This document shows, piece by piece, positions 28,660 to 32,233 of a DNA stretch of 64,000 nucleotides. A program made the position numbers and the translations under genes. The stretch covers positions 389,614-453,613 of the forward strand of contig NW_003314334.1 of NCBI RefSeq assembly GCF_000143415.4. Reading direction: 5' to 3'. The DNA comes from Selaginella moellendorffii. Its lineage: Eukaryota; Plantae; Lycopodiophyta. The notes beneath the pieces are model-generated. The model ran no database searches, was not told the DNA's origin, and saw nothing but the letters and a program-made list of their open reading frames with translations. Every line of letters starts with the position of its first letter. The stretch's first letter is position 1.

Positions 28660-29671
28660 CTAAAGAAACGACGGATGAATGTCCTCTGTCACAAGTTCGT
28701 CCGCGAGCTCTGTGTGCAAGGCATCTTCAGGCACGCTTGGGTGCTGCGGATGGAACCACTTTCTGCTACAAGACTGAGCTCTGTCCGTATCAGGCTCCAC
28801 GAACTGGCGCTTTGTTTCATCGGTCTCTAGATACTTCCTCCATTTGCTCGAGTCTGTCCTTGTTGTGCTAGAAGACTGGAGTCCACCAGCATTTTGCTTT
28901 CTCCACTCATCCAAACAGGTCCCTGTTTCAGACTTCGTGCCGCAGTTGCTCCATCTTCCCGAGTTCAGGTCGTTCTTCACAGGAACATTTTCCTTTCCCA
29001 GGTATCCAGCTCCATGCAGCTTACTACCAGTCGCAATGGTCGTCTTTTTGGTGTTCTTCTCGCTTGAAACTGAATGTGCTTTGAGCGGACCATCAAGCCC
29101 ATCACATTCGTAACACGCTACTTCGTCGTGCAACCTCTCCGTTCTTTTCCGTTTTGTGGCACTCTCTGGGATAGAAGTCACGTACATCGTATCCTCGTCA
29201 CCAGCACGAGATTCAACCTGTGAGTCCTGCCAAGTGTTGCGATTAGATAAAAGAGAGAACAAAATAATCAACTAGAGACTCACCTCGGTCTCCAAGTACT
29301 CGGCCCATTTGCTTGGCTTAGTTTCGTAACCATGGACATTCTTTTCTCCAACTTCGCTTTGTCCATTCTCTTGTGTGGTGAGATCTCCCACGTCGTTCGG
29401 CTCAAAGTGATCTTGCTCCTGCGCTAGAGGGGAGTAATTCAGCGTTTGGACCAGCTCTCGAATTTTCTTTGCAGCGCCAGAGCTTCCATAGACCTTGGTG
29501 ACCGATTGCTTCTCATTGCAAACGCTACAACACCATTTGCTGCTGGATTTCTTCCGTGGCTTCACCTGCAAAGCACACGCGAGGTTAGCTCGATCAAAAA
29601 CTCAAAAAAAGATTCTCAAGTACCTGGAACATTTTGCACGCGTAGCATCGAAGCGCCAAAAACTCCGCCAT
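28660..29671 (-). CDS. MRNIP: MRN complex-interacting protein-like
   Basis: MAEFLALRCYACKMFQ/VKPRKKSSSKWCCSVCNEKQSVTKVY..KIRELVQTLN; SKW repeats. Confidence 0.8.
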
Positions 29672-29739
29672 CGAGAAAACCCTAGAAATTTCCCGCGCTC
29701 GAGTAAAAGCTAGGGTTTAAGAGTTCTTCTAGGATCAGG
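29672..29739. promoter_or_regulatory. 68-bp head-to-head spacer with two oppositely oriented telo-boxes and an E2F-type site
   Basis: aaaccctag at about 29677, tttcccgc at 29689-29696, tagggttt at 29711. Confidence 0.6.
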
Positions 29740-30254
29740 ATGAGCGTCAATCGGTTTTGCCCCTACTGGTACCTCAGATCTTGGAGCTTTTCTTTCACCC
29801 TGTGTGCTTTCTTCTCCAGCGAGAGCCTTCTGGATCCCGAGGAAGATGCCGAGAGAAAGATCCTGCTCTGGTCGTGCCCAGATTGCACTCACAAGGTGAG
29901 AGATTTCGCCCCTAAAATCACAATCCCAGTGAGATTCTTGGCCCCAAATCGATTGAGCAGGAAGAAGCCGCGGACAACGTGACATACCACAAGGTGATCC
30001 AGAAGCCATCCGAGGACAAGACGATGCCCGCGATCCTCCCGCGCACTCGCAACGCGCGATGCCCCAAATGCGGGCAATGCGAGGCCAGATTCTGGAAGGT
30101 AAGAATCTAGATCGCGCCGCGATTGCGATTGCCGCTGCTAATCGACTGGAATTTCCAGGCCAGGCCTCCTGGCGAGCTGCTGGTGAGCCTCTTCTTCGCG
30201 TGCTGCCACTGCACGCATCGATGGCAGGAGCGCCCGGAAGAACACGCCGTGTGA
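29740..30254 (+). CDS. NRPB9: RNA polymerase subunit 9 (RPB9-like), divergent; 4 exons
   Basis: Spliced: MSVNRFCPYCESLLDPEEDAERKILLWSCPDCTHKEEAADNVTYHKVIQKPSEDKTMPAILPRTRNARCPKCGQCEARFWKARPPGELLVSLFFACCHCTHRWQERPEEHAV*. Two Zn ribbons. Confidence 0.85.
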
Positions 30255-30415
30255 GGGCGGCGAGAGAGAGAAAGAAAACCCTCGACGCAAGCTCGAAGAA
30301 CACGAAAAGCATTTAGAATGATTCCCTTTGAAAAACCCTAGAAAGGCGAGGACGAGCCGAGAGCTAGGGTTTGTAGGGCATGGCGCATTGCGATCGATGG
30401 CGGCGATGAGGAGCG

Positions 30416-32233
30416 ATGGCCGGCATGGAGGTGGACGACGGCCCCGCTAGGGTTGGCGGCAAGCGCCACATTTCCAGCCATCGCATCCCCCAGGTGTGTA
30501 GATACTGGCAAGAAGGCCGATGCAACAAGGGCGATAGCTGCCAGTGGCTCCACTCGTCGGGCCCTGGAACATCCGGGAGGCTCGATGGCGATAATTTTCT
30601 CGTAGGAAGCAAGCGGCACAACAATGTAGTTGAGGGGCGGCGATGGGGGAAGCCTCGCGGGCGGAGAGGCGGCGGTGGCGGTGGCGGCCGGGGGATTTTC
30701 ACAGACGGTGGGAGACCGCGTCCCAGGGACAAGCCTTGTATATTTTGGATGAAAGGCGACTGCAATCGTGGTAGCCAATGCAATTTTCTTCATTCCTACA
30801 GCACTACTACAGAGATGGAGATGATGACCCAGCTCACAGGCCACACCAAGGTAGGCTCGGACTCATCTCTTTCTCGGTTCTCTTGTTCTTCGCATCGGTG
30901 TTTGATCGCTTTTGCTTCTTCGCAGGCCGTGAAAGGAATCGCATTATCTTCTTCGTTATACACGGGAGGCCAGGACAAGTCCGTCAAAGTGTGGAACAGC
31001 GACGACGGAAAGGTTTGCGTCCAGAGGCTTATAAGAGTTTTCGTATTGACTTTGCTATCTCTTCCCCTTTGGTTGCAGTGTACAACCACTGTTCCTATGG
31101 GATCTGAGGTGGAGTCACTACTTATCGCGTCTGGGTGGCTGTTTGTGGGGCTTCCGAACGAAGTTCGGGTGAGAATTTTTTTTTCTGTCATTACAGTGCT
31201 CTAACTTCGATGCCTCGTGCATAAACTTCTGTTCTCGCAGGCGTGGAACATGCAAACCAACGCTCAGCAAAGTCTGGACGGCCCCAAAGGTCAAGTTTAT
31301 GCTTTGGCTGTCTGCGAGGATGCTTTGTTTGCCGGTTCTCAAGTAAGTAAGCCAATCTTTCAAAGCAAAACCGAAGTGGATGGTTTGCTAACAAGATGTT
31401 TTGAAGGACGGAAGCATTCTGGCTTGGAAATACAACACGGCGGTAAATGCTTTCCAGCCGGCGTATGGTTTGTATGGCCACGCCGGTGCTGTTGTAACAC
31501 TGCAAGCTGCTGGCGGCAGACTCTATTCCGGGTCCACGGATAAGTCCATTCGGGTAGTGTATCAGATTGGTTTGGTGTGAAAAAACGAAAGTATTACATT
31601 TTCATGAACAGGTATGGAACATCGCCACCAGAGAGTGCTTATTTACTCTTCATGGCCATTCTAATGTAGTTATGAGCCTGCTTTGCTGGGAGCAATTTTT
31701 GTTATCGTGTTCTTTGGACGGGTATATAAAAGTAAGTCATCTCAAAGTCTTGCTAGCGATGTGTTTTGACGCTGTTTTCGTTTTGCTCCAGGTCTGGGCG
31801 GCCACTCCAAGTGGATTAGAAGTCACTTACACGTACCCTGAAGATGATCAGGGAGACGAACTCGATGTAAGCTTTGCAAGTTCTTGCAAGTTCTTTTGGT
31901 TTACGTGAATCTTCTCTTTTCGCTCAGGGTGCTCTGGCTTTGTGCGGTACAGTCGATGCGCAAGGGAAGCCAGTGCTCTTGTGTTCATACAACGACAACA
32001 CTGTGAGACTGTATGATCTTCCAACGTAAGTTCTCGAGCAAACTCTAGGCTGCGAGTCACTCAAACTTACCATGCGCTGCTTTGTTCGCAGTTTTAACGA
32101 GCGAGGAGTTTTGTTCTCTCGAGACGAAGTGAGAGTTTTGCAAGGCGGCCCTGGAGGGCTGGTTTTCTCCGGAGAGAGTTCTGGGGATGTCAAGGTGTGG
32201 TGCTGGACCAAGGCCATTTCGTCTACAGGCTGA
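30416..32233 (+). CDS. ZFWD: CCCH zinc finger + WD40 protein (ZFWD family)
   Basis: CRYWQEGRCNKGDSCQWLH and CIFWMKGDCNRGSQCNFLH, then WD40 repeats (LHGHSNVVMSLLCWEQFLLSCSLDGYIK). Confidence 0.88.

Follow-up and report, generated by a model that had tools for sequence, protein, structure and literature searches.

RPB9, the ninth subunit of Pol II-type nuclear RNA polymerases, is one of the small polymerase subunits that green plants conserve most strongly. The yeast subunit adjusts fidelity, backtracking and the choice of start site. Two groups of described proteins are close enough to be set beside the Selaginella moellendorffii protein considered here. RPA12.2, RPC11 (RPC10), TFIIS and TFS resemble it in having N- and C-terminal zinc ribbons and a last knuckle of the CxxC form, but differ from it by the QxRSADE catalytic hairpin, which the Selaginella protein does not have. 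The plant subunits NRPB9 or NRP(B/D/E)9a and 9b (chain I of 7eu0 and 8hyj) share with it the cysteine spacing of ribbon 1 and the absence of a QxRSADE hairpin, and they give its best match in both sequence and fold. In this second group, differences lie in the last knuckle, which is CCHC (CxxC) in Selaginella versus CCNPNC (Cx4C) in plant NRPB9, in the 7-residue C-terminal tail of the Selaginella protein and in its sub-threshold Pfam scores. According to the literature, Pol V function in Arabidopsis requires NRP(B/D/E)9b and not 9a. Genes of the NRPD1/E1-like, NRPD2 and NRPD7 types are present in Selaginella (PMC5569507), and for lycophytes the papers cited here treat subunits 1, 2, 4, 5 and 7 and not the ninth (PMC4476159, PMC10533338, PMC5569507).

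The window, a 64-kb stretch of S. moellendorffii scaffold GL377638.1 (assembly GCA_000143415.2), carries an RPB9-like gene whose four exons (29, 76, 138 and 96 nt) make up a coding sequence of 339 nt on the forward strand, specifying 112 amino acids and a stop codon (Table 1). Four GT-AG exons and a product of this length had been proposed in an earlier note on this DNA, and both are borne out by scripted inspection of the splice borders and by RNA joints. The start codon is placed at 29740 because the frame has a stop at 29704-29706 and no ATG from there to 29740. The second Cys codon is split by the end of exon 1 (phase 2). Retention of intron 1 would add 17 residues within zinc ribbon 1 and gives the 80-aa open reading frame listed for this region.

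At NCBI, the gene is represented only by partial, unnamed models, one per haplotype: SELMODRAFT_19054 (hereafter P0001) and SELMODRAFT_128647 (P0151). The NCBI models choose the upstream AG of the NAGNAG acceptor of intron 2; in P0001 the acceptor is thereby placed 3 nt upstream (29958), with an extra Gln as the result. RNA contigs back the acceptor at 29961 and not this upstream choice. P0001 and P0151 were used for the database, family and structure searches in place of the joined 112-aa model, and residues 1-11 of the protein were covered by reading by eye and exon-wise translation only. A local tblastn with the joined translation found no second RPB9 copy within the 64-kb window.

Table 1. 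Features of the RPB9-like gene and of its neighbourhood (positions are counted in the window)
Feature	Position	Strand	Description
RPB9-like exon 1	29740-29768	+	Start codon and first CxxC of zinc ribbon 1; from sequence and the joint in runs X1 and X5
RPB9-like intron 1	29769-29819	+	51 nt, GT..AG; in frame and stop-free
RPB9-like exon 2	29820-29895	+	Remainder of zinc ribbon 1 with second CxxC; 76 nt
RPB9-like intron 2	29896-29960	+	65 nt, GT..AG; NAGNAG acceptor (29956-29961)
RPB9-like exon 3	29961-30098	+	Shortened linker, PAILPR and first half of zinc ribbon 2 (CPKC ... EARFWK)
RPB9-like intron 3	30099-30158	+	60 nt, GT..AG
RPB9-like exon 4	30159-30254	+	Second half of zinc ribbon 2 (CCHC knuckle, HRW), 7-residue C-terminal tail and stop
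Antisense intron	29912-29987	-	76 nt, CT..AC on the + strand; joint in runs X2 and X8
MRNIP-like gene, 5' part	29272-29671	-	ATG at 29671; first intron 29566-29623, joint in contigs
CCCH zinc-finger and WD40 gene	from 30416	+	Starts ~160 nt beyond the RPB9-like stop codon

The protein belongs to the RPB9 family and not to RPA12/RPC11, as had been proposed. In a phmmer search of the PDB, P0001 matched Arabidopsis NRPB9a (7eu0_I) with E=2.1e-17 and the Brassica oleracea chain (8hil_I) with E=4.5e-17, followed by Drosophila RPB9 (3.5e-14), human-type RPB9 (~5e-12) and yeast RPB9 (~1e-7); RPC10/RPC11 reached only 0.31 and RPA12 gave no match. Among 1.84 billion representatives, HMMER returned 159 proteins with E<=1e-3, only four of them with E<=1e-10, the nearest being 47% identical. 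Within the best 150 of these 159 matches, DPTLPR or a close variant of it occurs in most, and QxRSADE in one. Pfam scores are low: PF01096 (the TFIIS-type ribbon) gives 14-18 bits on exon 4 and P0001 (18.2 on P0001), short of its cut-off of 21, and for PF02150 (Zn_ribbon_RPB9) there is no match on P0001, from which the first 11 residues and the first CxxC are missing, on single exons or on the intron-retaining reading frame. The AlphaFold2 model, that of P0151, was built on a 60-row alignment and has a mean pLDDT of 81, with values >90 over ribbon 2 and low values in the linker. Foldseek against the PDB places 36 matches to RPB9 (chain I of Pol II, IV or V) ahead of all others; the first RPC11 match has rank 37 and the first RPA12 match rank 41. 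Membership of RPA12/RPC11 was rejected on E-values, motif scan and fold ranking. A grouping with an archaeal TFS-like sequence, obtained at weak support (74) in a 95-row quick tree, was read as long-branch attraction.

Exon structure points to the same family. Exon sizes are 29/76/162/81 nt in the canonical RPB9 gene of the liverwort Riccia sorocarpa and 29/76/150/90 nt in a copy from Calypogeia fissa, and the phases are identical in all three genes. Exon 3 of the Selaginella gene is 24 nt shorter than that of Riccia and ends at the same place, after the equivalent of FFQ. Identical intron positions and phases indicate that the gene was inherited or duplicated as DNA from an ordinary RPB9 gene of plants; origin as a retrocopy was rejected, the introns being at ancestral positions.

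In zinc ribbon 1, encoded by exons 1 and 2, the cysteines stand at residues 7, 10, 29 and 32 and align with those of canonical RPB9. In zinc ribbon 2, they stand at 69, 72, 96/97 and 99, and residue 75 is a further Cys. All eight Zn-ligand Cys positions claimed for the protein are therefore found in the exon translation and in the alignment. The KILL, LPR, LFF.CC and HRW elements are also present. The near-invariant DPTLPR that precedes ribbon 2 is absent and is replaced by PAILPR, in which LPR alone is retained. This replacement, together with EARFWK for EAVFFQ and CCHC for CCNPNC, had been described before and is read in the exon translations in each case. The loop equivalent to QxRSADE reads ARPPGELL, without an acidic hairpin, and both the exon translation and a motif scan confirm that the QxRSADE loop is missing. 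Compared with canonical plant RPB9, the linker between the ribbons, noted earlier as shorter, lacks 7 residues and the last knuckle lacks 2.

These changes are distributed unevenly. With a consensus of 97 canonical streptophyte RPB9s as reference, ribbon 1 is identical at 13/24 positions with 0 residues missing, the linker at 11/40 with 7 residues missing, and ribbon 2 at 16/39 with 2 residues missing. The canonical streptophyte proteins, algae included, are 72-100% identical to this consensus (median 82%), as against ~40% for the Selaginella protein, which matches 40/114 columns and keeps 21 of the 33 positions of >=95% conservation. In a 38-row maximum-likelihood tree, the Selaginella stem measures 1.42 substitutions per site; end branches in the same tree measure 0.01-0.26 for canonical streptophytes and 0.6-1.0 for other divergent plant copies. 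Placement inside the streptophytes is not rejected by the AU test (p=0.26).

Evidence for expression comes from contigs of four public runs, belonging to four studies, that were placed on 29200-31200. The runs had only been guessed to be RNA, and the presence of exact splice joints marks them as RNA-derived; their contigs show no levels, and strand is readable from splice signals only. The joints 29768/29820 and 29895/29961 occur in contigs of runs X1 (study P1) and X5 (study P3). The joint 30098/30159 occurs in X1, and X5 has matching loose ends on both sides of it. All three sense joints are thus found in contigs from two studies, which settles in the affirmative whether the gene is expressed.

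The RPB9-like gene lies head to head with an MRNIP-like gene, the start codons being 68 nt apart (29671 on the reverse strand and 29740 on the forward strand). The product of the MRNIP-like gene is a protein of 298 aa with the Pfam domain PF15749 (MRNIP). One contig (X1, record 2) spans the region from MRNIP exon 2, across intron 29566-29623 and the sequence between the genes, to the 3' border of RPB9-like exon 1, so the 5' ends of the MRNIP-like and RPB9-like transcripts overlap. Downstream, the CCCH-WD40 gene has introns at 30851-30925 and 31013-31078, with joints in all four runs.

In runs X2 and X8, the RPB9-like gene is crossed from end to end by a spliced transcript of the opposite strand, which extends from at least 30319, in the exon upstream of its intron, down into MRNIP-like exon 1. 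In record 24 of X8, the antisense intron is joined to 29622-29912 and the contig continues past the MRNIP intron. Being joined to MRNIP exon 1, the antisense transcript resembles an isoform of the MRNIP-like gene with a long 5' UTR. Among the pieces listed for X2 and X8, unspliced sequence covers sense introns 1 and 3 in X2 and sense intron 1 in X8; in these two of the four runs, the spliced transcript over the RPB9-like gene is antisense only. The listing of sense-spliced joints in X1 and X5 alone hints at alternative sense and antisense states of the locus.

The second NCBI model, P0151, comes from scaffold GL377655.1 and falls into the same 90% cluster as P0001. Gene order on that scaffold is the same as in the window, namely PPR, dirigent, MRNIP (-), RPB9-like and CCCH-WD40, which identifies P0151 as the allele on the other haplotype. 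The RPB9-like gene is intact on both haplotypes. Their coding sequences differ at 4/339 positions, two synonymous and two non-synonymous (Thr/Pro in ribbon 1 and Glu/Asp in ribbon 2), and their introns at 6/176. The resulting pN/pS of 0.27 is not significant (p=0.20), and non-synonymous divergence is 0.8% versus 3.4% in introns (p=0.065). A 6-nt GA-rich indel at 30268 also distinguishes the haplotypes, in the short spacer between the RPB9-like and CCCH-WD40 genes.

Length changes in the RPB9-like exons are all multiples of three. By our own estimate, neutral drift over ~1.4 substitutions per site would leave 8/8 cysteines in place with a probability of ~1e-5. Judged from the sequences compared, retention of the ligands, of LPR, LFF.CC and HRW, of the open frame and of in-frame indels is a stronger argument for constraint than pN/pS. 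A pseudogene was rejected as the main reading, both haplotypes being intact, the Zn ligands kept and the RNA spliced. Thus, the description of the gene in the earlier note as a divergent and intact member of the RPB9 family stands, given the ~40% consensus identity against 72-100%, the intact haplotypes and the spliced RNA, while its status as a paralogue and its lycophyte-specificity are hypotheses.

Long-branch RPB9-like copies also occur in other plants: in Calypogeia fissa (P0008 and P0152), Welwitschia (P0101), Dioscorea (P0011), Dendrobium and Phalaenopsis (P0123 and P0082) and Cajanus (P0017 and P0271). They are lineage-restricted copies and, like the Selaginella gene, lie on long branches, and DPTLPR is partly lost in those of Calypogeia, Welwitschia, Dioscorea and Dendrobium. 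They differ from it in degree, with 23-27 of the 33 invariant positions kept versus 21/33 in Selaginella, the most divergent of all. A canonical RPB9 is found beside the divergent copy in four genera (Dendrobium, Cajanus, Dioscorea and Paspalum). Rapidly evolving additional copies of RPB9 are thus a pattern that recurs among plants and has been little studied, and the Selaginella gene is the most extreme case found. No paper treating the divergent seed-plant RPB9-like copies as a class was found in the literature; in databases, some are named '9A-like' or '9B-like'.

Calypogeia fissa (L004:8001-10073; P0008, P0152 and P0153) has at least two genes for a divergent RPB9-like protein. In these copies the linker is 3 residues shorter, EPVLPV replaces DPTLPR, exon structure is canonical and the proteins are recognised by Pfam. 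Several angiosperm entries named 'RPB9' (P0002, P0005, P0006, P0155 and P0156) are 190-325 aa long because their gene models join RPB9 to upstream sequence, which in Populus is similar to a short-chain dehydrogenase; they are probably annotation artefacts.

In the best tree, the Selaginella and Calypogeia copies are weakly joined (ultrafast bootstrap 57, SH-aLRT 83), a grouping that may be due to long-branch attraction. The Selaginella protein is closer to canonical RPB9 (44% identity) than to the divergent copies (33-37%, with 37% to Calypogeia), which argues for independent origins. It is tempting to see in the Selaginella gene and the Calypogeia copies the remnants of one ancient land-plant RPB9 paralogue, which would have arisen with a Pol II-derived silencing polymerase as its dedicated ninth subunit. 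The shortened linker and the lost DPT common to Selaginella and Calypogeia, together with the weak join in the tree, speak for such an ancestry; with the two lineages less similar to each other than Selaginella is to canonical RPB9, we consider it highly improbable.

No canonical Selaginella RPB9 occurs among the best 120 of 689 matches to Sesamum RPB9. These 120 are mostly angiosperm proteins, with streptophyte algae and one liverwort also present, and mosses, ferns, gymnosperms and Marchantia are missing as well; since such groups are missing too, the Selaginella blank among the best 120 of 689 says little. One candidate for the canonical protein, the Logan-derived P0256 (run SRR25322598), was rejected, its place in the tree being with the Cajanus copies (99/96). 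As for orthologues elsewhere, a word-index protein search with the exon 1-2 reading frame and P0001 matched only the protein itself. In runs from the species itself, contigs over the gene measure 100-330 nt, so that protein sets derived from transcriptomes would miss the RPB9-like protein. Synteny does not separate orthologue from paralogue either, as no MRNIP neighbour lies within 8 kb of the Riccia canonical locus or of the Calypogeia locus.

The Selaginella gene derives from a normal RPB9 gene, encodes two zinc ribbons with a shortened linker between them, is spliced as predicted and is intact on both haplotypes. The reading that we prefer, with moderate confidence, is that it specifies an alternative RPB9-type subunit, expressed and constrained, with altered docking. 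The predicted protein would retain the RPB9 fold and, as an alternative ninth subunit, would most likely occupy the position of RPB9 in a Pol II-type enzyme, which lies between the jaw/funnel of the largest subunit and the lobe of the second subunit. Its altered linker and lost DPT would change this docking or the preference for a given largest subunit, and the genome probably also encodes, at another locus, a conventional RPB9 that serves Pol II. The term 'alternative' expresses an expectation, given that no canonical Selaginella RPB9 was retrieved among the best 120 of 689 matches.

Other readings have to be weighed against that of an alternative subunit. The gene could be the sole RPB9 of S. 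moellendorffii, a true orthologue that evolves unusually fast and serves Pol II as well as Pol II-derived enzymes. Its introns occupy the positions of canonical RPB9, no Selaginella protein is found among the best 120 of 689 relatives although streptophyte algae and a liverwort are, and to our knowledge S. moellendorffii has had no whole-genome duplication and has many single-copy families. However, those 120 relatives are mostly angiosperm proteins from which other land plants are missing too, the gap between ~40% and 72-100% consensus identity would be extraordinary for a sole Pol II subunit, and the divergent copies of Dendrobium, Cajanus, Dioscorea and Paspalum are accompanied by a canonical one; we regard a sole RPB9 as unlikely. 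Quite improbable, in our estimation, is a redundant duplicate under relaxed constraint, transcribed from a promoter region common with the MRNIP-like gene and drifting towards loss or a non-polymerase role. Such drift would fit the longest branch in the family tree, the disappearance of hallmark motifs, Pfam scores under their cut-offs, the failure of word-index and HMMER searches to find orthologues (nearest 47%), the 2/112 amino acids at which the haplotypes differ and the antisense transcription across the gene. It fits poorly with eight zinc ligands, LPR, HRW and a four-exon open frame kept on both haplotypes, with in-frame indels only, with accurate splicing and with a non-synonymous divergence (0.8%) below that of introns (3.4%), though with p=0.065.

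The same altered linker can be viewed in another light. The earlier note had proposed, by pure inference, a dedicated ninth subunit of a Selaginella Pol IV/V-like enzyme, and precedents published for Arabidopsis (9b) and maize, combined with the NRPD1/E1-like, NRPD2 and NRPD7 genes of Selaginella, lend themselves to this proposal. The linker is moreover the most altered region of the protein (11/40 identical, 7 residues lost), and in Pol II structures it is the RPB9 linker that docks on the largest subunit. Against this stand the solved Pol IV and Pol V structures of Arabidopsis and Brassica oleracea, which hold a ninth subunit of the ordinary NRPB9 type (7eu0_I, 8hyj_I and 8hil_I), so that a divergent subunit is not required by Pol IV/V, and the small amount of 24-nt siRNA in S. 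moellendorffii (PMC5569507). A subunit dedicated to Pol IV/V is accordingly very unlikely in our view, and an alternative RPB9-type subunit of a Pol II-type enzyme is the reading that we retain.

Specialised plant polymerases have repeatedly been built via duplication of Pol II subunits, of which the ninth has received the least study outside Arabidopsis and maize. At present, the Selaginella gene is an unannotated and ordinary-looking instance of a fast-evolving gene copy. If it were the sole RPB9 of Selaginella, Pol II would tolerate far more change in its ninth subunit than other plants suggest. As an expressed copy with a predicted RPB9 fold but a rewritten linker, it offers a natural variant for probing polymerase choice and the role of the ninth subunit.
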